Sequence record: NC_049849.1
Length of the DNA: 64,000 nt
Direction: 5' to 3' (one strand)
Below, piece after piece: positions 7,780 through 64,000 of this stretch (its first letter is position 1; each line of letters begins with the position of its first letter). The translations under genes were made by a program, and so were the position numbers. The notes under the pieces were generated by a model, which worked only from the letters and a program-made list of their open reading frames with translations, made no database searches and was not told where the DNA came from.

Positions 7780-8007
7780 ATGAGTACATCAATCATTTCT
7801 GATGGTGCAGAGCTGGAATTGTCCGCAGAGAACACCGAAATGTTCCGGCAGTTCCTGTTGGCTATGCACCGCTACGACAAAGCAACAAAAAATACGAAAG
7901 CCGAGGCGCGGTTCGCAGTTGAAGACTGCTTGGGTAACCTGCTCATCAAATGCCAGCGCCTTGAAAACGAAGTGGAGAAGCTGAAGTGCACTCAATCACA
8001 ATCCTGA
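7780..8007 (+). CDS. hypothetical protein
   Basis: Packed ORF with a coiled-coil-like C-terminus. Confidence 0.55.
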   Translation: MSTSIISDGAELELSAENTEMFRQFLLAMHRYDKATKNTKAEARFAVEDCLGNLLIKCQRLENEVEKLKCTQSQS

Positions 8008-8498
8008 TAGGCATCAACGGTTGCGGCAAGACTGCATGGCGCAATCGCTTGATCGAAGAAGAGCGCGGGCATCTGACATTCTCAATTGAGAACTGCGTAC
8101 GCGGGTTCTACTACTCGCACCGCGGCCGTATCGTTGACATGGAAATCATGGATGCGTTTGCCAAAGAGCATCCGAAGTTTCCCGAGTTCATGTGGCGCAA
8201 GTTTGAAGCTGCCTTGGACAAGTTTCAGTCGGTGATCATCGATGGTGACTTCATTACGCCGGAGCAACGTGCCCCGTTCATAGACAAAGCCCGCGCACGA
8301 AATATTCCTGTGTACGCAGTCGTATTCAATACTCCGTTTGATATCGCGTACGAGCGCAATCGCAGACAGCGCAAGCCGTATCGAGTGACCAAGCGTGAGC
8401 TTGAGTACCAAGTGCGTAGGTTGGATATCTCGACGTTGAAGGCCGAAGTCGATGATGTGCATTACGTGGACAACATTCAAGTCAAGGGGTTTGCATGA
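7986..8498 (+). CDS. P-loop kinase (AAA_33 / polynucleotide-kinase-like)
   Basis: N-terminal Walker A LIGINGCGKT; VIIDG strand; R..F; lid YERNRRQRK. Confidence 0.75.
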   Translation: MHSITILIGINGCGKTAWRNRLIEEERGHLTFSIENCVRGFYYSHRGRIVDMEIMDAFAKEHPKFPEFMWRKFEAALDKFQSVIIDGDFITPEQRAPFIDKARARNIPVYAVVFNTPFDIAYERNRRQRKPYRVTKRELEYQVRRLDISTLKAEVDDVHYVDNIQVKGFA

Positions 8499-32265: not shown

Positions 32266-32682
32266 ATGCAGTTGATACATGGAGTGCGCGGTTCGGTCCC
32301 AAGCATCACTGGATACTGGATCGCCGCGGATGGTACGGTCTACTCACTCAACAAAGGGGCGTACCATTCACGACTTCTGGCAGAAATCGAAGCCAGCGAG
32401 GCAGCCGCTGATGGCGTGGACTTCACGCACGCCTTGATAGACCTCGAAGATTTCGTGGCACGTATGCAGACCGACAAGGGATGGATTCGTGTCAACAGTA
32501 GGTATGACGAGTTCACGGTAACGGTCGACGCCAACGAGGCGAAGTTACCCAAGGCGCAAGTTGAGGCCTTGAACGACCTAATCAACATTCACAACAACCA
32601 AGAGCGGCTCGTGTTCAACGAAAATCGAGCACGTCTTGGCCGCCGATTCATTCAACAACTGAGGGACCAATGCGTAACCTGA
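32266..32682 (+). CDS. hypothetical protein
   Basis: Start trimmed from ORF 32134. Confidence 0.6.
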   Translation: MQLIHGVRGSVPSITGYWIAADGTVYSLNKGAYHSRLLAEIEASEAAADGVDFTHALIDLEDFVARMQTDKGWIRVNSRYDEFTVTVDANEAKLPKAQVEALNDLINIHNNQERLVFNENRARLGRRFIQQLRDQCVT

Positions 32683-33215
32683 GCAAAACCATCGACTGGT
32701 GCATCAATCAAACTCTGCCTGTGGCGCTGATCGACATTGATGGTGTCGTGTGCGACAACCGGCACCGCCTTCACTACTTGGTCGAAGTCGTTGATGGTGT
32801 TCAGCGTGAGAAGGAAGTCACTGACTGGGCGACGTACGAATCGGAATGGCGTAAGGATACGCGAGGTGCGGGCTGCCCGGTCGTCAAGAGCCTGGCTCAT
32901 GTGTACAGCATCGTGTTTCTCACGGCGCGGGAAGAAATGTCTGATGAGGACCAGAAGGAGCTGCTGCACACGCTGGCCGAATGGTGCGGTCTCAATCGTG
33001 CGGCGCTGATTATGCGCGAGCGCAACGTGGCAGGCATTCAGCGCCCGCCGGCGTCTGTATTCAAAGCAGAGGTTGCGGAATACATGCAAAACGAAGGCGT
33101 TGAAATCGGCCTGTTCATTGATGACTCGCAAGATAACGTCATCGCAATGGCCGGCTTGTCGATCCCCAGCATGCGCCTCTACAACCACCTGAACGAAACC
33201 AACCTGCACTACTGA
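32670..33215 (+). CDS. HAD-family phosphatase (T4 PNK 3'-phosphatase-like)
   Basis: LIDIDGVV motif I; FLTAREE motif II; LIMR; FIDD motif IV. Confidence 0.8.
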   Translation: MRNLSKTIDWCINQTLPVALIDIDGVVCDNRHRLHYLVEVVDGVQREKEVTDWATYESEWRKDTRGAGCPVVKSLAHVYSIVFLTAREEMSDEDQKELLHTLAEWCGLNRAALIMRERNVAGIQRPPASVFKAEVAEYMQNEGVEIGLFIDDSQDNVIAMAGLSIPSMRLYNHLNETNLHY

Positions 33216-51867: not shown

Positions 51868-53043
51868 TTAGTACCGGCTATCCATTGCGGTGACAGAGTT
51901 GCCACTGTAGCTGACATATAGGCCGAGCTTCTTACTGATGAGCATGTTGCCAGCGGCTGGGTGAAAGCCTTGGTCACGCAAAATTCCAACCACCGAGTCC
52001 TTGGGTGCGGTGAAGACTGCGGCACTGACTTGACCCTTGATGCTGAATTCCATTTGCAAGCCTTGCACCGAAGGCACCATCGTTGAAATAGACAAGCAGG
52101 GCTCGCCATCAATCAAGTTGCGGAATGCAAACAGCAGGTCGCGGAATTTGGGGAGCACTTCGCCCAGCAGGATCACCGTAGTGCCCCAGCCGTTCGAGTT
52201 CTCTTTGACCAGGATAGGCATGCGTTCGCCAATCGCCAGAAAGCGTGCGCGTCGCATCTTCGAGTCAATTTCCCAAGCTGCGGGCTTGAAAGGCTTGAAC
52301 CCAAGGCCGATGAAGTCGGAGAGCACGTCCTCGATATCCGAGTTACTGCGGAGTGTCAGGTCGATGCTGTTCAGCGAGTAATCGTTGATCGACGTTACCA
52401 GCTTCTTCATCAACTCTTCAGCGGCGCGCTTAACGTCGCTTTTGTTGGTAAAGGTTCTGGCTTCCATCGTAGATGCCCGCATCTTCATCTTTGTCTTCTT
52501 TGCTACTTTCTGCATGGTCTGCCCTTTACCCAGCATGATGATGCGTGTTTCGTCCTTCTTCATGACTTTCGGATCAACAGATTCGCCCAAGTACGTGAGG
52601 TCGCCATTCATTGCATGGTGGACGATGAACTGCGGATACTTCTGACCAAGCTTGGCCCATAGTCCGCTGGCGCCTTGGCTTTGAGTCTCACCCGCCATAA
52701 ACACCATACCCTTTTCCAAGAAGTAGGCGTAGATGGAATAGGCGAGACCCTTGCCTTGCTCAGTCTTCGCAATCAAAACGTGCGGAGTCCACACGTCTTT
52801 GTTCATCGTCTTCTCAAGCTCGAATCGTGCAACCACTTGCTTGGCACCGTCGATCACGGCATACGCATAGCCGAAGCGCGTTTCGCTGAACAAGGCCAGA
52901 GTGTATCCTGGCCGAAGTTCGACTGGCTTCTTCAGCTTCACCTCGCCCCTGGCAATGTCCTCAGTCATGCCGTTCAGCGTTGACTTTAGATTCTTGTCAG
53001 TGACTCGGTGGTTAGTGCGCAAGGCTTCAAGGTTGGGGGTCAT
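51868..53043 (-). CDS. GNAT-domain protein in the tail gene cluster
   Basis: IAKTEQGKGLAYSIY (acetyl-CoA motif A) and GETQSQGASGLWAKL; start trimmed to 53043 to avoid a 110-nt overlap. Confidence 0.6.
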   Translation of the reverse strand: MTPNLEALRTNHRVTDKNLKSTLNGMTEDIARGEVKLKKPVELRPGYTLALFSETRFGYAYAVIDGAKQVVARFELEKTMNKDVWTPHVLIAKTEQGKGLAYSIYAYFLEKGMVFMAGETQSQGASGLWAKLGQKYPQFIVHHAMNGDLTYLGESVDPKVMKKDETRIIMLGKGQTMQKVAKKTKMKMRASTMEARTFTNKSDVKRAAEELMKKLVTSINDYSLNSIDLTLRSNSDIEDVLSDFIGLGFKPFKPAAWEIDSKMRRARFLAIGERMPILVKENSNGWGTTVILLGEVLPKFRDLLFAFRNLIDGEPCLSISTMVPSVQGLQMEFSIKGQVSAAVFTAPKDSVVGILRDQGFHPAAGNMLISKKLGLYVSYSGNSVTAMDSRY

Positions 53044-56875: not shown

Positions 56876-57520
56876 TTAAGACTCCGGAAAAGGAATTGTA
56901 ACTGCGCTGTGTCCTAAGACTTCCTCAATGTTTACTTCTTTGACTATGCCGGTTTCACCCAGGACTGGTTCACTGATGAACCCACGCAGCGTGAATGTAG
57001 ATGTACATTCGTACTCGGCAGTGCTTTCGGTCTTGTTTTCCATGGTGGGTGTCGGAACACTTTCACTCATTTCCAGACCTACACGCAAATTCAGGTCTCC
57101 GTATTTCACAGAGAACTTTAGGCCACCTTGCCGTCTAACGAATAGCCAGCGCCGTTGGAACTCCAAGACTGAACGTTGATTAGTCCCCATCATTTGATTG
57201 GTAACGTACGCAACTTCAAACTCGAACAGCGCAGGCATCAGCCGCACACGATAGAACTGATTACCATCACTCTGTATCACAACTGGCACGCCTGAACGTG
57301 CGAGCGTTTGAGTGTGGAACGACTGAGCATCGTGTCCAATGCTAGTCAAGCTCAAATACGCATACGGATACACGACCGATTTACCGGCAAGCAGCTTCTC
57401 GATAGTACGGATGCGATCTACTGAGTTACCGTACGCCACCATGCACTGAAAGCGTTTGGCGAAGTACTGAGCAACTCCTTCGAGCATATACTCTTCAAGC
57501 GGTTGCAGGGCTAATGACAT
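56876..57520 (-). CDS. putative tail terminator/neck protein
   Basis: Size and position upstream of the sheath; beta-rich YPY..L / F.FEV.Y pattern like gp15-type connectors (inference). Confidence 0.5.
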   Translation of the reverse strand: MSLALQPLEEYMLEGVAQYFAKRFQCMVAYGNSVDRIRTIEKLLAGKSVVYPYAYLSLTSIGHDAQSFHTQTLARSGVPVVIQSDGNQFYRVRLMPALFEFEVAYVTNQMMGTNQRSVLEFQRRWLFVRRQGGLKFSVKYGDLNLRVGLEMSESVPTPTMENKTESTAEYECTSTFTLRGFISEPVLGETGIVKEVNIEEVLGHSAVTIPFPES

Positions 57521-57538
57521 ATTCAACGTCCACAAATG

Positions 57539-57599
57539 AGAAAAGGCCCAAGCAGTAGCCAGTTATAGCTACCAACTTGGGCCACTAGGCTACTGCTTA
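57539..57599 (-). terminator. terminator with overlapping alternative antiterminator stem
   Basis: GGCCCAAG/CTTGGGCC + UUUU, versus the 11-bp AAGCAGTAGCC/GGCTACTGCTT stem. Confidence 0.6.
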
Positions 57600-58148
57600 C
57601 TTTTGCTTTTCAGCGAAGCTGGCCAGCAGCTTGGCGAAGCTAGGAGCCGAAGCCTTAACGGTCTTCTTGGCAGCGACCTTCTTGCCAGCAGCGCGACGGG
57701 CAGTCACGGGGGCGGGAGCATCGTCCTCATCCTCGTCATCTTCCGGTTCGTCGTCTTCGTCTTCTTCAGCCGGCTCGTCGTCTTCGGTGTCGTCTTCGTT
57801 GTCGAAGGCAGCTTCGATATCTTCGAGGTCTTCGGCGGCGCCTTCGTCTTCCATGTCGCCTTCAAGCTCTTCGTCTTCGACTTCGAGTTCGGCTTCAGCC
57901 TTCAGACGCTTGCTGGCCTTGATAGCCTTGGCCTTAGCAGCTTTGACTGCCTTGGCACGCAGGGCCTTGGCTTCCGGAGTGTGCTCGAACGCAGCGCGGA
58001 GATTCTTTTCCAGCGTCATGATCGTAGCTTCCACATCCGATTCAGCCATCGCCGCAGCGAAGCACTTGGCCGATTCCTTGTGGTTGCCGTTTTGGTAATG
58101 GGCGGCTGCAAGCAGCATGCCGTCCAGTGCGCGGAGGTGTCGTTTCAT
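57597..58148 (-). CDS. putative head-associated protein with acidic tract and Lys/Ala tail
   Basis: AAGGA SD before ATG 58148; directly downstream of the MCP gene. Confidence 0.65.
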   Translation of the reverse strand: MKRHLRALDGMLLAAAHYQNGNHKESAKCFAAAMAESDVEATIMTLEKNLRAAFEHTPEAKALRAKAVKAAKAKAIKASKRLKAEAELEVEDEELEGDMEDEGAAEDLEDIEAAFDNEDDTEDDEPAEEDEDDEPEDDEDEDDAPAPVTARRAAGKKVAAKKTVKASAPSFAKLLASFAEKQK

Positions 58149-58171
58149 CTTTGATCCTTGGTTGGCCATTG

Positions 58172-58199
58172 AACAAGGGGTAGCCTATCAGACTACCCC
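58172..58199 (-). terminator. hairpin after the major capsid gene (partial terminator)
   Basis: GGGGTAG...CTACCCC followed by TTGTT on the - strand. Confidence 0.55.
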
Positions 58200-58208
58200 G
58201 TGCGCATC

Positions 58209-59294
58209 TTAGTTGCGGATGCCCTTGGCAACAGCACGCGGGTTGGCCAGGGTCATAGCGAACGACTCCCAGATCACCCAGCCGCGGCCCGGAGTCTTTT
58301 CGACTTCGATACCGACCGGTGCGGATTGCAGGCCGCCGCGATCCGAGTAAGCACCCAGGTTCAGAGGATCGGCGAAGACAAAGAATTCGCCTTGGTTCAG
58401 AACCTTATGCTCCGGGTGACGATAAGCATCGGTCACCAGGGTAGCGCCCCACAGGACACCCAGCTCGCCGGTCAACAGAAGCTCGTGACGAGCAACCGGG
58501 TCGATGGCGTTTTGCATTTCGGTGTTGCCGATAATGTCTTGCAGCAAGTCCGAAGCCATCAGGACATACGGAGTCTTCAGGCCCCAACGGTTGACCTTCG
58601 TCAGCACACGAGCAAACGTGTACGGAGTCAGCTGACCGGAGATAACCGACAGTTCGTTTTCCAGGTTCACGACAGCGTTCGAAGCCATGTACAGCAGACG
58701 GTCTTCAGCAACCATCAGGGCTTCTTGACCTTCGACGAACTTCTCTTCCAGCACGTCGTTGTTCGACTGGTTGATTTCGTTTTCCGGCACGAAGGGACGG
58801 GCAACGATTTGGAATTCCGGCGGAGTGAACCAACGGTCCAGAGCGATTTGCGCGTCGATTTGCGTGGGCGACGTGGAGTACACGGCGGTCACGTTCTTCG
58901 AAGCCATCTTGAAACGCGGGATCGAACCCTGGTCGACAGTGTTCTTCGTCAGGAACTTGCGCAGGAAGCCTTGACGGTTCGCGGTGATGTACAGAGCTTC
59001 AGCCATCTTTTCGCCGAGGACGCGATAGCTGCGCGAATCGTTGAAGGCGGCGGTCAGAAGTTCACGGTTGCGATTCTTGAAATCGACTGCGGCGGTCAGG
59101 GTGGTGTCAGCAACGACACGGCCTTCGGCAGCAGCTTGCATGAACTTCGCGTTTTGGCGCCACAGGTCAGCCTTCGAGCTGGCGTTCATTTCGCCATTCG
59201 CGCCGACCATACGCGCTGCACCCTTCTCGGTGCGGAATTCGGAAGCAGCCTGCACAGGAGTGCGAGCGGCCTTAACGGGAATGCTTTTAGCCAT
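58209..59294 (-). CDS. major capsid protein (HK97 fold)
   Basis: 361 aa; E-loop/P-domain pattern GFLRKFL..NTV..GSIPRF...FQIVARP....EI...DVL...EDRLL; AAGGAG SD; follows protease, scaffold and decoration genes. Confidence 0.85.
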   Translation of the reverse strand: MAKSIPVKAARTPVQAASEFRTEKGAARMVGANGEMNASSKADLWRQNAKFMQAAAEGRVVADTTLTAAVDFKNRNRELLTAAFNDSRSYRVLGEKMAEALYITANRQGFLRKFLTKNTVDQGSIPRFKMASKNVTAVYSTSPTQIDAQIALDRWFTPPEFQIVARPFVPENEINQSNNDVLEEKFVEGQEALMVAEDRLLYMASNAVVNLENELSVISGQLTPYTFARVLTKVNRWGLKTPYVLMASDLLQDIIGNTEMQNAIDPVARHELLLTGELGVLWGATLVTDAYRHPEHKVLNQGEFFVFADPLNLGAYSDRGGLQSAPVGIEVEKTPGRGWVIWESFAMTLANPRAVAKGIRN

Positions 59295-59326
59295 TTAAAT
59301 TCTCCTTGGTTTTCTGAAGCGGCTGA

Positions 59327-60007
59327 TTACTTGAATTCAATGCCGAGGAACGGAATGTCCGTGGTGGGCAGATCGACAACCCAACCGTCGATGACTGCGC
59401 CAGTGCCCTTGTCAGCAGTGATGTAACCGCCAGCGGCCGTTTCGATAACCTTGGCTTCGGCCCAGTTTGCACCGGTATCGACAAACGAGGTATAGATCGT
59501 GCCACGCGTGACCAGACCGATTTGGCCCAGCTGATCGCCAGAGTAGCCACCGGGTTGCACGTCGCCGTACGTACCACGTTGCTCCAGGCCGGTCAGCACA
59601 AACTTGTAGGTGATGGTGACGAAATCGCCAGCCGTCAGACCCGAGACGCGATTGCCAACGACAGTCACGGTGCCAGTCACGGGGACCGGAGCGCCGGTGG
59701 TGTTGTCGAAGATGAACACGTCGGCCGGCGACTTGGGAGCGCGAGCCAGAACCAGGACGCCGGTTTGCGGCACTTGGTACGATTCGACGGTGTTGGCTTC
59801 GTCTTCACGGAAGGGATAGGCCGACGTTTGGACCATCGTGAAACCGACGAACACTTCGTCAGCCAGAACGCCAGTCGAAGGAGCTACGCCCTCTGCGGTA
59901 GCGCCGAGCATGCGCACAGCGGCTTGGCCTTGTGCAGTGAAAACAGCACCGGGGGCGATGATTGCCTCATGGGACAGAGTCGCTCTCGTTTTAGGAAAGT
60001 AAATCAT
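59327..60007 (-). CDS. putative capsid decoration/cement protein
   Basis: Beta-rich, Gly/Ala/Val-rich, immediately upstream of MCP; CAGGAG SD (position-based inference). Confidence 0.5.
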   Translation of the reverse strand: MIYFPKTRATLSHEAIIAPGAVFTAQGQAAVRMLGATAEGVAPSTGVLADEVFVGFTMVQTSAYPFREDEANTVESYQVPQTGVLVLARAPKSPADVFIFDNTTGAPVPVTGTVTVVGNRVSGLTAGDFVTITYKFVLTGLEQRGTYGDVQPGGYSGDQLGQIGLVTRGTIYTSFVDTGANWAEAKVIETAAGGYITADKGTGAVIDGWVVDLPTTDIPFLGIEFK

Positions 60008-60052
60008 ATGTTTCTCCTGATTGAGGTAGAGGCAGATTGTTGTCCTCTGACT

Positions 60053-60062
60053 CTATAAAATT
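60053..60062 (-). promoter_or_regulatory. AATTTTATAG putative late promoter
   Basis: AATTTnATA motif in the gap upstream of the decoration-MCP genes. Confidence 0.45.
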
Positions 60063-60076
60063 TAGAACTGTGATTC

Positions 60077-61705
60077 TCAGAAACTGAGGGGTGCGTCACC
60101 CGCCAGGATAGCGTGGGCTTCCAGGCTGGTAGCGTTGGCACGACCATAGCCACCGGACACGCGGGCATTACCCGGACGTGCAAGGCTAGCGGTGATCGAA
60201 GCCGGGAGGAACTGCTCTACTTCATCAAAGTCTTCAGCCTCGCCTTCAAAGCCGTCAGCGTCGGCTTGCATGTCGGGCACGTCTTCACCGAATTCTTCAT
60301 CTTCCACTTCCGACTCAACGAAGTCGCCTTCGTCGTCGATCAGATCAAGAGCCGCAGCGAATTGAGTACGCGTCGTTTCAGGCATAGCAGCCAGCTTGGA
60401 AGCCAGGGTAACGATGGACTTGGCGTAGCTGATGCCATGCGTAGCGAACGCAGAGTTCACGACACGGTTGGCATTACGGATACCGCACTGTTGCAGATTC
60501 GCAATCAGGCTGGCAGCCAGTTCATTCGTTTGGTCCTTGAAATAGCGACGGTTGATACCGACCGAAGCGATAGCCAGGCATTGTTCCATGGCCTTGTCCT
60601 TGGCACCGGCAACCTGACGCACAGCAGCCGTGGTCTTTTGGACTCGGGCTTCAACGCGACGATTGATGGCATCGGACTTAGCGATGTTGATGGTGGACAG
60701 TGCAAAGCCCATCGACTTCAGACCAGCACGAATGCCCGCACGCTGCATGGCGACCGTGGTCACGTCTTGGAAGTTGTCGGACAGATACACGTCAGCGCAA
60801 CGAGCCTTCACAGCTTGCTTCTTGCCCAGGGTTGCGATCACTCGATTGGCCTTCAGGACCAAGAGACGCGAACCAACCGAGGCAAACACGCACGACTCAA
60901 CTTCGGTGTCGTCCATGCCGTCCAGGTCCATAACGCTGAAGTTGCCTTCAGCTTCATCAACCGGAGCGTCGATCGTGATTTCCTCGCCTTCTTCTTCAAC
61001 GTCAGCAGACAGGTCACCCTGACCAACTGCGTCGCCTACCGGCAGGTCGATTTCTTCTTCAGCGTCCCAGTCGCCATCGGTGTCACCCATGTCGAACTCG
61101 TCGTCTTCGGCTTCGGGCTCAGCGTCGTCTTCAAAGTCTTCAGCGGCTGCGCTGAGGAATTCGTCGATGTTTTCTTGAGCGTCGATTTCGCCGGCGTCGG
61201 GGATGTTGGGATCGCCAGGAACGGGTTGGACTTCGCCAGCGCCATATGCAATACCTGCGTCTTCGCTTTCGTCCATGTCGGCAGCGTTCTCGTCTTCGTC
61301 ACCGAGATTGGCTTCGACCAGCGGACCAGCAACGGCGCCAGGCGAGTTCAGTGCGATTTCGGGTTCGGCATCTTCCAGGTAACCTTCAGCCGGGTTAATG
61401 TCGTTGTCGATGGTCGAAACGTTGTGGGACTCATTGGGCAACGTGTCGTCAACTGCCGACATGATGTTCCAGCGAGGCTTGGGTTTGTTCTTACCCGGTT
61501 CGGTCTTGGTGTAGGTCGAGCCCGGTTCTTGTTTGTCGTCGTACTTCAGGTCGCCCGGGGTGAAAGCATTGTCGATACCGTACTCTGGCTTTTCTTGCGC
61601 TTCCAGAGGACCGTTGTCGTAGTGCAAGCTCGTCGAGTCATTCGCTGCGGCGACCTTGAACTTCTTCTGCTTTGCTACTCCGGCGATTACTCGCGTCTTA
61701 GCCAT
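60077..61705 (-). CDS. putative scaffold/prohead core protein
   Basis: 542 aa, extremely acidic centre, between protease and MCP; TAGGAG SD. Confidence 0.6.
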   Translation of the reverse strand: MAKTRVIAGVAKQKKFKVAAANDSTSLHYDNGPLEAQEKPEYGIDNAFTPGDLKYDDKQEPGSTYTKTEPGKNKPKPRWNIMSAVDDTLPNESHNVSTIDNDINPAEGYLEDAEPEIALNSPGAVAGPLVEANLGDEDENAADMDESEDAGIAYGAGEVQPVPGDPNIPDAGEIDAQENIDEFLSAAAEDFEDDAEPEAEDDEFDMGDTDGDWDAEEEIDLPVGDAVGQGDLSADVEEEGEEITIDAPVDEAEGNFSVMDLDGMDDTEVESCVFASVGSRLLVLKANRVIATLGKKQAVKARCADVYLSDNFQDVTTVAMQRAGIRAGLKSMGFALSTINIAKSDAINRRVEARVQKTTAAVRQVAGAKDKAMEQCLAIASVGINRRYFKDQTNELAASLIANLQQCGIRNANRVVNSAFATHGISYAKSIVTLASKLAAMPETTRTQFAAALDLIDDEGDFVESEVEDEEFGEDVPDMQADADGFEGEAEDFDEVEQFLPASITASLARPGNARVSGGYGRANATSLEAHAILAGDAPLSF

Positions 61706-61744
61706 GTATTTCTCCTAGCTAGTCAAAATGGACGTCTAGTCCTG

Positions 61745-61754
61745 ATATGAAATT
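61745..61754 (-). promoter_or_regulatory. AATTTCATAT putative late promoter
   Basis: Identical to 54598-54607. Confidence 0.5.
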
Positions 61755-61766
61755 GTGGACTGTGAA

Positions 61767-62522
61767 CTAATATGGACTCTTGTACTGGTCGATTCCATTA
61801 TGGATCGTGTCAGACAGAGCTACAGGCCACGCCGGTTCGGCAACCACTGAGAACTCGCAACCAATGATATCGTGCGCATTGAGGAATGCCAGGTGCTGAT
61901 CGCCGTTGTAATCGCGCACCACATTCCATTGCATCTGCGCGTTGGGGTCCAAGTGTTGGCAGCACTGATGCTTGTCAAACACTGCACCGCAATAGCTGCA
62001 AGTGAAGCCGCCTGCGTCCGCACCCATCGAGTAGGTGTTGATTCGCTTATCGGCAACGTCCTGCACCACATCGGTGTACTTGGTCTTGTCGAGTGCAACC
62101 AATGCCATGACTTTCCACAGCTTGCCGCCACCGTAGCCGTTGATCTTGTGCAGCGACGTATCGAGCACCGCGCCGAGAGCTTTGGTGCAGTCTTTGTTGT
62201 CATGCTCCAAGTGCATCGGTACGCCAGCCCAGCTCTTGTACACCATGCGTGAGACAGGCGGAGGTTGGAACTTGGTCAGCTCGGCCAGAGGAAAGCCGAT
62301 GCCGTTGCGGTTCGGAATGTCAGACGGGCACAGCGGAGTCGTGACGAAGATGTAGTCTTCAAGCCTCGGACTAATGTGGTACGTCTTGGCTGCAAAGGGA
62401 AGCCACACGCGGGCATCCAGTTCGAATGCACCGTACGCTTCCTTCAGACCATCACGCCCTTCTGCCGTATCTCCGTCGAACGTCATCAATGGCTGTTCGG
62501 TGTACGAAGTGATTCGTGTCAT
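61767..62522 (-). CDS. prohead (capsid maturation) protease
   Basis: PNRNG..F, PMHLEH (His), TYSMG (Ser), CSYC..CQH zinc insert, EFSVVAEPA. Confidence 0.75.
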   Translation of the reverse strand: MTRITSYTEQPLMTFDGDTAEGRDGLKEAYGAFELDARVWLPFAAKTYHISPRLEDYIFVTTPLCPSDIPNRNGIGFPLAELTKFQPPPVSRMVYKSWAGVPMHLEHDNKDCTKALGAVLDTSLHKINGYGGGKLWKVMALVALDKTKYTDVVQDVADKRINTYSMGADAGGFTCSYCGAVFDKHQCCQHLDPNAQMQWNVVRDYNGDQHLAFLNAHDIIGCEFSVVAEPAWPVALSDTIHNGIDQYKSPY

Positions 62523-62527
62523 GCTTG

Positions 62528-62917
62528 TTACCTCGAGTAGAAATACACTTCACCGTCGGCGGTAAGCTCTACACGTACTGCAGTAAAGAGCGGGGCTTCG
62601 CAGGTTTCAATGGTGCCAACGGCTGGCGTTTGATCGTTGCCCCACAGCACCTTGGCTTGCACGTCCGCGTCGGGATTGCAAGCAAATGCGGGATGCTGGA
62701 GGGTATACTTTAAATTGCATGCTGCGGCGGCCATGACGCAGAACGCATCATGCGCCCCGACGGTCACTGCAACTTGACCAACGTCTACGTAAATGACTTC
62801 GCCGGCTTTGCCGCCAACTGCAGTCCACGAGCCGACGATGGGATAGCCCTCAGCGCCAAGACCCGCAGCGCCACGGCCTTTGAAGTTAGGACTGTTAGGT
62901 CCAATGATGTATGCCAT
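62528..62917 (-). CDS. putative virion protein
   Basis: TAAGGAG SD; in the head gene block. Confidence 0.6.
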   Translation of the reverse strand: MAYIIGPNSPNFKGRGAAGLGAEGYPIVGSWTAVGGKAGEVIYVDVGQVAVTVGAHDAFCVMAAAACNLKYTLQHPAFACNPDADVQAKVLWGNDQTPAVGTIETCEAPLFTAVRVELTADGEVYFYSR

Positions 62918-62926
62918 GTCGGCTCC

Positions 62927-63427
62927 TTAGTTAATCGTGTCTGCGTAGACCTTGGGCTGAAACTCAATCACGACGTGGTTGTCTGCGAGATACGCATTCA
63001 TTTGATCCACGAGTCCCGGCACTTCGTCATGGAACTTGCCGAGAGTGATGTGAGCGTTGTAGTCAGGATGCCCATGCTTGAATCCCTGACTCACAAGGTG
63101 TTCATGTATTGCTTGAATCTCGGGACTGTAGACTCGGAGTACCAAAATCTGGCGCTGTTTGTGATCGGTCCAACATTCAACGCCAGTAGCCAATCCCGTG
63201 ATCGTACGATCTTCGGGCATTGTTGCTTCTTGTGGAAGCGGCCCAGTGTGATACATCAGAGTACAATGCAGGGAAGTGGTGTTGTCGTACTTGAGGTCAG
63301 GATTACGAAACCTACGCTTAAGATCAGACAACGCCAAGTAGCCAGCCTCACTCGGATCGGCCCATGCGTAAAAGCCATCGTCAACCGTGCGCAGTACAGA
63401 GTACAAGACCTTTGCTGCTACGCGCAT
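62927..63427 (-). CDS. acb1: 2H phosphoesterase, T4 57B/Acb1-like (candidate anti-CBASS nuclease)
   Basis: Two HxT motifs (LHCTLMY, NAHITLG); GFYAWA, VECW, ILVL and FKHGHPDY correspond to T4 57B GLYVAA, LEVW, TLVL and ATHDFDDY as recalled; GGAG SD before ATG 63427. Confidence 0.75.
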   Translation of the reverse strand: MRVAAKVLYSVLRTVDDGFYAWADPSEAGYLALSDLKRRFRNPDLKYDNTTSLHCTLMYHTGPLPQEATMPEDRTITGLATGVECWTDHKQRQILVLRVYSPEIQAIHEHLVSQGFKHGHPDYNAHITLGKFHDEVPGLVDQMNAYLADNHVVIEFQPKVYADTIN

Positions 63428-63443
63428 ACTGTTCTCCAATAGT

Positions 63444-63469
63444 GGGTGAGCCACCGAAGCAGCTCACCC
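63444..63469 (-). other. intergenic cUUCGg hairpin (mRNA stabiliser or weak terminator)
   Basis: GGGTGAGCTGC-TTCG-GTGGCTCACCC on the - strand; no U-tract. Confidence 0.55.
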
Positions 63470-63476
63470 GCGTGCC

Positions 63477-63986
63477 TTAGATTTCCAGAGCGCCCGCATC
63501 ACGAACTTGATTGACCTTCAAGCGCTTAACTTCGCGCTGCAGTTCTTCCAGGTTCGTAATCACCACACCGGCTTGCTGAATCTTCTTCATCATAGCCAGC
63601 AGCTTTTCCTTCGTCAGTGCGTAGTAGCACATCGTAGGATCAGACTTGTACCAGGTGACGCCAGGCGCTCTGACCTTGATGGCCTTGAGCGTACCGACTT
63701 GACCACGAATCGGCAGAGCCAGATACACCTCGCCGTTTTCCAGAATCGGATAGGGCTTGATGACCTTGGTGTCAGTCGACGGCTTGTGCTCCATGCGGTA
63801 GAAGTTGCGCAGCTGATTGCGATTAGCCAACTTGAAGGTCAACGAGCTTCTGCCCATCTTACCTTCCTTCATCAGATTGTAGATGCCCAACAGTGCTTGC
63901 ATTTCGTTGGTCATCAGCGGATCAGGAACAAAGCCAGCCTCGTTCCATTTCGTAATCTGCTTCTTCAGTCGCAGCGGCGTTTCCAT
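63477..63986 (-). CDS. hypothetical basic protein (may extend beyond the window)
   Basis: 169-aa ORF near the window edge. Confidence 0.6.
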   Translation of the reverse strand: METPLRLKKQITKWNEAGFVPDPLMTNEMQALLGIYNLMKEGKMGRSSLTFKLANRNQLRNFYRMEHKPSTDTKVIKPYPILENGEVYLALPIRGQVGTLKAIKVRAPGVTWYKSDPTMCYYALTKEKLLAMMKKIQQAGVVITNLEELQREVKRLKVNQVRDAGALEI

Positions 63987-64000
63987 GTGGGCGTAGAAGT

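Follow-up and report, generated by a model that had tools for sequence, protein, structure and literature searches.

Achromobacter phage Motura is a jumbo myovirus with a genome of 221,431 bp (MN094788 / NC_049849), and its gene gp183, which lies directly in front of the head genes, encodes an ordinary, intact member of the Acb1 family. The Acb1 enzymes of T4 and FBB1 cleave the cyclic di- and trinucleotide messengers of CBASS (antiphage signalling based on cyclic oligonucleotides) and protect the phage, and their catalytic tetrad and mechanism have been described (Hobbs et al. 2022). We analysed a stretch of 64,000 nucleotides of the Motura genome, referred to here as the window, whose position 1 is record position 62001; over the 7 kb compared with Motura, the two sequences agree at 100% identity. 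Profile searches, a structure model and alignments of relatives show that gp183 is an Acb1-family two-histidine (2H) phosphoesterase in which the fold, the catalytic residues and a lid are all conserved. Our preferred reading, to which we give a probability of roughly 0.75, is that gp183 belongs to the N-terminal-lid subgroup of this family and acts as a 2H phosphodiesterase that needs no metal, removes CBASS signals and is transcribed together with the head genes. Anti-CBASS function is supported at the level of the family, and the range of substrates would be that predicted from the relatives.

The gene and its parts are located in the window as follows.

62927..63427, minus strand: acb1-type gene gp183, named 'RNA ligase' in GenBank and RefSeq; 166 amino acids from its ATG, stop codon included in the coordinates
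63433..63437, minus strand: ribosome-binding site GGAGA, seen in the sequence 5 nt upstream of the gp183 ATG
63383..63427, minus strand: codons 1-15, N-terminal lid segment including MRVAA, from conservation among 24 members and homology to PDE-9 residues 1-15
63260..63268, minus strand: first catalytic HxT motif, H54-C-T56, seen in the sequence; its His matches the first catalytic one of PDE-9 and FBB1 Acb1 in alignment
63044..63052, minus strand: second catalytic HxT motif, H126-I-T128, seen in the sequence and aligned with solved Acb1-type enzymes

Membership of the Acb1 family

With the Pfam model for Acb1 (PF23474), whose gathering cutoff is 27 bits, gp183 scores 47.4 (E 2.1e-12). The match aligns residues 18-130 of the protein with positions 2-109 of the 144 in the model, and the database copy of the protein already carries a precomputed tag for this family. 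An exhaustive HMMER search returned 341 cluster representatives at E ≤ 0.001. Approximately 22 of these match gp183 from residues 1-4 to about residue 165 and share its N-terminal extension, and PF23474 is matched by all 24 members of the subfamily alignment. A word-indexed protein search recovered gp183 itself and a single relative with 62% identity, and the family becomes visible only in the exhaustive HMMER search.

The closest proteins of known structure are also of the Acb1 type. PDB entries 9Q2G (closed lid) and 9Q2Y (open lid), which represent the 2H enzyme PDE-9 of Burkholderia phage BCSR5 (QRE00328.1), match gp183 over residues 1-147 on both sides (HMMER, E 1.7e-25), while FBB1 Acb1 (7T26) matches gp183 residues 18-130 with E 2.5e-4. 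A profile built from the subfamily finds PDE-9 with E 3.4e-61, residues 1-166 aligning with 1-164, and FBB1 Acb1 with E 8.3e-14. By BLASTP, PDE-9 and gp183 are 33% identical over 160 amino acids (E 1e-31).

An AlphaFold2 model of gp183, computed with 101 homologues as input, is predicted with high confidence (predicted local distance difference test [pLDDT] 95.5, predicted template modelling score 0.89) and has a compact 2H phosphoesterase fold whose nearest neighbours are the solved Acb1 structures. The best Foldseek match in the PDB is 9q2y_A, with template modelling (TM) scores of 0.87/0.90, a root-mean-square deviation of 1.7 Å and E 3.4e-14, followed by 9Q2G (TM 0.80) and then FBB1 Acb1 (7T27, TM 0.64/0.75). 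The top five PDB matches are all of the Acb1 type (9Q2Y, 9Q2G, 7T27 and 7T26; TM 0.63-0.90), and the named entries near the top of a search of a viral structure library are called 'Anti-CBASS protein Acb1'. The E values of the Pfam, PDB and Foldseek matches are well outside what chance would give.

These comparisons also bear on a different proposal, in which gp183 is a LigT/ThpR-type 2',3'-cyclic phosphodiesterase that heals RNA ends and, with a phage kinase and ligase, repairs RNAs cut by the host. Matches to the corresponding models do occur, but all fall short of their cutoffs: 17.2 bits against 27 for 2_5_RNA_ligase2 (PF13563), 15.6 against 23.3 for LigT_PEase (PF02834) and 20.1 against 65.7 for TIGR02258. 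Likewise, Usb1, LigT and plant cyclic phosphodiesterase rank below the Acb1-type structures in the Foldseek search at TM scores of about 0.5, compared with 0.87-0.90 for PDE-9.

Catalytic core and N-terminal lid

When gp183 is aligned with solved Acb1-type enzymes, its two HxT motifs fall on their catalytic His-x-Thr pairs; the catalytic histidines of PDE-9 are H50 and H123 (Doherty et al., bioRxiv 10.1101/2025.08.21.671373). The tetrad H54, T56, H126 and T128 is thus complete. Of the 24 aligned subfamily members at least 90% have H54, and T56 is invariant among them; in the alignment of 101 homologues, H54, T56 and T128 each reach 90% or more. H126 does not vary in either alignment. Other residues conserved among the homologues include Y9 in the lid, Y20 and W86. 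In one representative of the N-terminal-lid subfamily, P0015, the first catalytic His is replaced by Tyr, and this protein may be an inactive variant.

The ligand contacts of Acb1 comprise the base-stacking aromatics Y12, W74, F107 and W147 and an adenine-contacting residue, E141 (Hobbs et al. 2022). The mapping of these contacts onto gp183 is approximate, as the numbering of Hobbs et al. and that of the PDB chain differ by an indel. Y20 of gp183 is invariant and aligns with the first aromatic. W86, found in at least 90% of sequences, lies near the second aromatic position with an offset of three residues in the HMMER alignment. The third position is occupied by His (His120) in Motura and PDE-9 and by Phe in most subfamily members, and the C-terminal Trp and Glu of T4-type Acb1 are without an aligned counterpart in gp183.

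Enzymes of this family differ in how the active site is covered. T4 and FBB1 Acb1 close by a C-terminal lid and PDE-9 by an N-terminal one (Doherty et al.; Hobbs et al. 2022), which crystal structures show to be formed by residues 1-15 lying over the active site; removing these residues from PDE-9 reduces its activity, mainly on a less preferred substrate (Doherty et al., bioRxiv 10.1101/2025.08.21.671373). The 15 N-terminal residues of gp183 match the PDE-9 lid, no match to a C-terminal lid is seen, and the two proteins are colinear from residue 1 onward, all of which places gp183 in the N-terminal-lid (PDE-9 type) subgroup. The consensus of this segment in the 24-protein alignment, PDE-9 included, is M-x-[IV]-x-A-[KR]-[IV]-L-Y, and its terminal Tyr (Y9) occurs in at least 90% of the sequences. 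In the gp183 model, residues 1-10 have a pLDDT of 78 and a helix is formed at residues 9-15.

A first-pass annotation made from the letters of this DNA had proposed a divergent Acb1 among late head genes whose MRVAA start might mark the protein for packaging. The first part of this proposal stands, since gp183 is a 2H phosphoesterase of the Acb1 family, keeps its whole tetrad and has a position among head genes, as do its two HxT motifs; the profile and Foldseek comparisons with Acb1 that it called for gave the PF23474 match above the cutoff, 9q2y_A as the top structure and FBB1 Acb1 as the next. The packaging signal was not borne out. MRVAA is part of the conserved N-terminal segment that serves as catalytic lid in PDE-9, and it therefore gives no support for a packaging tag. 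In addition, residues 1-20 of gp183 contain no LxE-type (L/I-x-E) site, a motif that is that of the T4 prohead protease and may not be that of the Motura protease, and the N-terminus does not have the character of a T4-type capsid-targeting peptide. A search for solved-structure relatives of the Motura prohead protease, from which its cleavage motif could have been inferred, returned none.

The same annotation had noted colinear similarity to T4 gp57B over the whole length of the protein. We compared gp183 with annotated 57B genes of Tevenvirinae (Acinetobacter phage 133 and KVP40) and with the Pfam Acb1 model. The 57B protein of Acinetobacter phage 133 aligns with residues 53-129 only (32% identity over 77 residues) and that of KVP40 with residues 18-152 (26% identity). 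A tblastn search with gp183 gave only one Escherichia phage record at E ≤ 0.001, and the genera listed by name at E ≤ 0.01 did not include Escherichia; the 57B genes of T4 proper were probably not reached directly by the gp183 searches. Colinearity with T4-type enzymes consequently holds for the core, residues 18-130 in the matches to Pfam and FBB1 Acb1, while the protein that gp183 follows over its whole length is PDE-9 of BCSR5.

Gene start and product name

The open reading frame of gp183, on the minus strand, is intact; its ATG is at 63427 and its TAA stop codon at 62927-62929. In GenBank and RefSeq the start is instead a GTG (63454) that lies 27 nt upstream of this ATG and yields a protein of 175 amino acids. 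The nine residues added in this way (63428-63454) are absent from every relative, and in the 24-sequence alignment all relatives start with M-[RK]-[VI] at the position of the ATG. Because the ATG is preceded at 5 nt by GGAGA, because the GTG lies inside a hairpin (see below) and because of where the relatives begin, the ATG is the better start; the coordinates and start codon chosen at first pass were therefore right. The product name 'RNA ligase', which is also the name borne by PHROG 755, would be in keeping with RNA end healing and is misleading for an enzyme of the Acb1 family.

Base composition was inspected for signs of recent acquisition and shows a slight dip only (G+C fraction 0.51-0.535 in the acb1 region versus approximately 0.55-0.57). 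The dip is uninformative in this respect because it is common to the 3' end of the neighbouring helicase gene.

Position in front of the head genes

The surroundings of gp183 comprise the following features, listed in the direction of transcription.

63477..64000, minus strand: 3' end of gp182, a gene for an SNF2-type helicase of 1528 amino acids that runs off the window; from the annotation and a PHROG match (DNA helicase)
63444..63469, minus strand: stem-loop that follows the stop codon of the helicase gene and precedes the ribosome-binding site of acb1; fold energy -29.4 kcal/mol, with z -3.07, unique in the window
62528..62917, minus strand: open reading frame for a 129-amino-acid protein, with its ATG 9 nt after the acb1 stop codon, kept directly upstream of the protease
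61767..62522, minus strand: prohead (head maturation) protease; phrog_18299, E 2.9e-74, and RefSeq
60077..61705, minus strand: open reading frame for an acidic protein of 542 amino acids in the scaffold position, annotated 'ATPase'; phrog_20988, conserved position
59327..60007, minus strand: virion structural protein of 226 amino acids; phrog_16710, E 3.1e-34
58209..59294, minus strand: major capsid protein; phrog_2522, E 3.2e-87, and RefSeq

The tail sheath gene lies further downstream of the capsid gene, and acb1 and the head genes share one strand within a long block of late genes. Both the annotation and the PHROG matches put acb1 directly in front of the head genes, in agreement with the head operon assumed at first pass. 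The copies of the helicase in relatives match the Pfam domain SNF2-rel_dom. The 129-amino-acid protein is conserved in all relatives (28-64% identity) and has no Pfam or PHROG match. The label 'ATPase' of the acidic protein in the scaffold position (60077-61705) looks wrong.

Given that only 9 nt separate acb1 from the gene downstream and that a hairpin separates it from the helicase, acb1 is most likely co-transcribed with the prohead protease, scaffold and capsid genes, as judged from gene order. Hairpins also occur at the helicase/acb1 junction in two related loci, L004 (9961-9983, z -4.03) and L014 (5928-5975, z -7.26), where their sequences are unrelated. A U-run follows the hairpin in L014 only, which resembles a standard intrinsic terminator. 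Conservation of position but not of sequence in three lineages suggests that the junction hairpin is a transcript boundary or an element that processes or stabilizes RNA.

Conservation of gene order

The order Acb1, a protein of about 129 amino acids, protease, scaffold, a protein of about 226 amino acids and capsid recurs in four uncultured metagenomic lineages, listed here with the identity of their Acb1 to that of Motura.

L004: Acb1 62-63% identical; helicase gene upstream
L012/L013: Acb1 39% identical; upstream genes other than the helicase
L014/L015: Acb1 39% identical; helicase gene upstream
L017: Acb1 39% identical; helicase gene upstream

Since the genes upstream of acb1 in L012/L013 are not the helicase, the link of acb1 is to the head block and not to the helicase. 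The prohead protease of L017 (6915-8825) has 636 amino acids compared with approximately 250 elsewhere and contains Hint, intein-splicing and LAGLIDADG domains, revealing an intein inside the head protease.

The nearest cultured relatives of Motura are BCSR5, BcepSauron/BcepSaruman and phiRSL1, whose proteases are 54-57% identical to that of Motura. In the loci compared (BCSR5, BcepSauron and phiRSL1), the slot held by acb1 is occupied instead by an unrelated acidic, low-complexity protein of 174-189 amino acids rich in Pro, Ala and Glu, at the following locations.

L009:5689-6258: slot protein of BCSR5
L010:5930-6454: slot protein of phiRSL1, ORF130
L011:5875-6402: slot protein of BcepSauron, gp087

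Thus, the slot upstream of the 129-amino-acid gene and the protease varies between lineages. The acidic proteins were considered as diverged forms of Acb1 and rejected, as they have no Pfam match and no meaningful alignment; they are possibly head-internal or scaffold-like components. Two labels in these phages look wrong: the Acb1 homologue of BcepSauron (BcepSauron_269, L002:7989-8501) is called 'prohead protease' in MK552141, and the head protease of BCSR5 (QRE00269, L009:6680-7672) is called 'endolysin'. phiRSL1 gave no match in the tblastn search with gp183.

The divergence of Acb1 tracks that of the phages, as seen when its identity to the Motura protein is set beside that of the capsid protein.

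L004: capsid 93%, Acb1 62%
L012, L014 and L017: capsid 63-70%, Acb1 39%
BCSR5 and BcepSauron: capsid 60-61%, Acb1 33-35%

The acb1 gene therefore evolves faster than the core head genes, which is usual for counter-defence genes. Judged from these sequence identities, the pattern would fit an old, relocated gene better than repeated recent capture.

Proposed function and points against it

We propose that gp183 would bind cyclic di- and trinucleotide signals such as 3'3'-cyclic GMP-AMP (3'3'-cGAMP), for which the 2H fold offers a U-shaped pocket, and that the first ~15 residues of the enzyme would then close over the ligand. The tetrad H54/T56/H126/T128 would open the ring by way of a 2',3'-cyclic phosphate intermediate, and the CBASS effector would be deprived of its activating signal. 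PDE-9, which shares its structural group with T4 Acb1, breaks down 3'3'-cGAMP as well as other CBASS messengers but is poor on 2'3'-cyclic di-AMP, and hence does not set off the Panoptes system (Doherty et al.). Possible targets exist in the host genus, as CBASS of types II and III has been found in clinical Achromobacter isolates.

The gene order suggests when the enzyme might act. The prohead protease of T4, gp21, cleaves a loop of the CBASS nucleotidyltransferase (CD-NTase) and so activates CBASS late in infection (2026 preprint, PMC12991175), and mutations that escape CBASS map to capsid and scaffold genes (PMC12991175). If acb1 is transcribed with the head genes, gp183 would be made as head assembly starts, the stage at which the T4 protease activates the CBASS cyclase. 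Producing an enzyme that degrades the signal alongside the CBASS trigger would be well timed.

Several observations weigh against the reading of gp183 as a CBASS antagonist expressed with the head genes. It shares only 33% identity with PDE-9, enzymes of one and the same structural group differ in the substrates they accept, and there are viral 2H groups that leave all 18 messengers tested uncut (Doherty et al.). The C-terminal ~35 residues, which in T4-type Acb1 hold the adenine-contacting Glu and the lid Trp, have no sequence counterpart in gp183. As for expression, its timing is read from gene order only; a scan of 57000-64000 for promoters and terminators gave no convincing acb1 promoter, the counts, those of sigma-70-like sites included, did not exceed those of shuffled sequence, and with the upstream hairpin in place there is scarcely space for a promoter ahead of the start codon. 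Finally, the Acb1 homologues of BCSR5 and BcepSauron lie far from the head genes, at the end of tail/baseplate blocks, and the acb1-protease linkage is therefore not universal.

Alternative explanations

The location of acb1 also invites the idea that gp183 is incorporated into the head, delivered with the DNA and active from the first minute of the next infection. Such carriage would add a route of delivery and keep the enzyme chemistry proposed above. It would agree with the place of acb1 directly before the head morphogenesis genes, a linkage kept in four further lineages, and with the presence in the same slot of cultured relatives of an acidic low-complexity protein of similar length that could be head-internal. 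However, late co-expression with the CBASS trigger accounts for the gene order without packaging, the N-terminus of gp183 is a conserved catalytic lid and not a removable tag, and its first 20 residues have no LxE-type site of the kind used in T4.

The most direct evidence for carriage comes from a more distant protein. CBB_118, which matches Pfam Acb1 with 58 bits, was detected in CsCl-purified particles of phage CBB through seven unique peptides covering 60.4% of the protein. Nevertheless, it is only about 27% identical to gp183 over 101 residues and is encoded amid NAD-salvage genes, not head genes, and soluble contamination of virion preparations is possible, as ClpP appears in the same CBB table with one peptide. 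We found no virion proteome of Motura or a close relative that lists gp183; the study of PaBG virions reports only 14 proteins, with no link found to the PaBG Acb1 homologue, and the Matilda preprint holds no virion data on the Matilda Acb1. On balance we regard virion carriage as unlikely. A broader version, that the Acb1 of Motura-like phages is a head component that arms the incoming phage, is offered as speculation in which we place little confidence, together with its weaker form, in which acb1 and the protease are co-expressed as 'trigger plus antidote'.

Another possibility concerns the signal rather than the enzyme. The main natural target of gp183 might be, for example, the cyclic tri-adenylate of type III CRISPR (clustered regularly interspaced short palindromic repeats) or the messenger of another cyclic-nucleotide system of Achromobacter. 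For enzymes of structural group 3 (T4 Acb1, PDE-8 and PDE-9), type III CRISPR signals and housekeeping cyclic nucleotides are substrates as well. Specificity is set by the enzyme core and varies among close relatives, and the Motura core is only 33% identical to that of PDE-9. Against this, the two nearest characterized enzymes both degrade 3'3'-cGAMP efficiently, CBASS types II and III are reported in Achromobacter, and the locus gives no hint of another system, making a main target outside CBASS distinctly improbable.

The RNA end healing introduced above is very unlikely, for although 2H enzymes have been proposed to take part in RNA repair by jumbo phages (Iyer et al. 2021) and the Motura window encodes elsewhere a polynucleotide kinase (PNK)-like kinase and a weak HAD_PNKP-like phosphatase, these genes lie 30-55 kb from gp183 on the other strand in the early region, the neighbours of gp183 are head genes, and the listed parts of the Motura genome, which leave out record positions 100-116 kb, contain no gene annotated as a bona fide RNA ligase. 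The two 'polynucleotide kinase' genes are at 7986-8498 and 32670-33215 (plus strand); one encodes an AAA_33 kinase (51 bits) and the other has a weak HAD_PNKP match (25 bits, cutoff 27.6).

A second 2H-fold protein

Neither a hidden Markov model scan nor a motif scan found a second 2H-fold protein within the window. Outside it, Motura encodes a very divergent paralogue of 182 amino acids, QDH83479.1, on the plus strand at MN094788 record positions 51885-52433 (L021:1885-2433). This protein is the BFVD hit A0A514CSM4 (TM 0.62-0.68); it aligns with an Acb1-like alignment in hhalign (probability 95.3%, E 2.3e-8) and has no Pfam match. Two other proteins of 182 amino acids were considered as the paralogue and rejected. 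Both catalytic histidines are replaced in QDH83479.1, by Arg in the first motif and Tyr in the second, and it is therefore unlikely to be an enzyme. It might bind nucleotides, and B2ZXM6 of phiRSL1 may be its counterpart.

Significance

The Acb1 family, its N-terminal-lid subgroup and the structure and activity of that subgroup are already published, and a homologue in a related Burkholderia jumbo phage has already been called anti-CBASS by DefenseFinder. What is new here is the assignment of gp183 to the N-terminal-lid subgroup, its corrected start and product name, and the fixed place of acb1 at the top of the head block in an uncultured Motura-like clade. These findings add a cultured Achromobacter phage to a recently defined enzyme group and correct the misleading database entry. 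They also reveal a clade of RSL1-like jumbo phages in which the first gene of the head block is consistently an anti-CBASS gene that lies two genes upstream of that for the prohead protease. If this linkage reflects timed co-expression or packaging, it would show in what way the late programme takes in counter-defence genes. Phages are under consideration against Achromobacter, a pathogen in cystic fibrosis, and the counter-defence genes that a phage carries are useful to know when matching phages to hosts.

Comparison with known systems

LigT/ThpR enzymes (TIGR02258 and PF02834; E. coli LigT, 5LDM) have the 2H fold and the HxT/S chemistry in common with gp183, but they lack an N-terminal lid and are cellular enzymes of RNA ends, not degraders of signals. 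CBB_118, of the Rak2-like Pectobacterium jumbo phage CBB, shares with gp183 the Acb1 family and a jumbo myovirus as its source, and is the only family member found here with direct virion evidence. Unlike gp183 it has 148 amino acids, lacks the N-terminal lid extension and matches residues 29-129. Its gene (L007:3989-4435) lies among genes for NAMPT, a nicotinamide mononucleotide adenylyltransferase/ADP-ribose pyrophosphatase and a Sir2-like protein, in what looks like a counter-defence cluster.

The 57B protein of T4 and the Acb1 of FBB1 (PDB 7T26/7T27) resemble gp183 in Pfam family, 2H fold, HxT/HxT tetrad and the aromatic of the first strand (Y20). However, T4-type enzymes have a C-terminal lid (residues 145-152) and no 17-residue N-terminal extension, whereas the reverse is true of Motura gp183, and their C-terminal third cannot be aligned with gp183 by sequence. 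The genomic settings differ as well, as 57B of Tevenvirinae adjoins 57A, 1, 3, 2 and 4 and not the head protease.

PDE-9 is the closest counterpart. It is nearly identical in length (165 versus 166 amino acids), colinear from residue 1 and equipped with the N-terminal lid and the two HxT motifs, and like gp183 it has the stretch H-G-H-P ahead of its second motif, in place of the H-S-F-P of most subfamily members. The phages that carry the two enzymes are both RSL1-like jumbo myoviruses of Burkholderiales hosts, with 57% identity between their proteases and 60% between their capsid proteins. The two genes differ in their location, since that for PDE-9 ends a tail/baseplate block 58 kb from the BCSR5 head protease, while gp183 is the first gene of the Motura head block.

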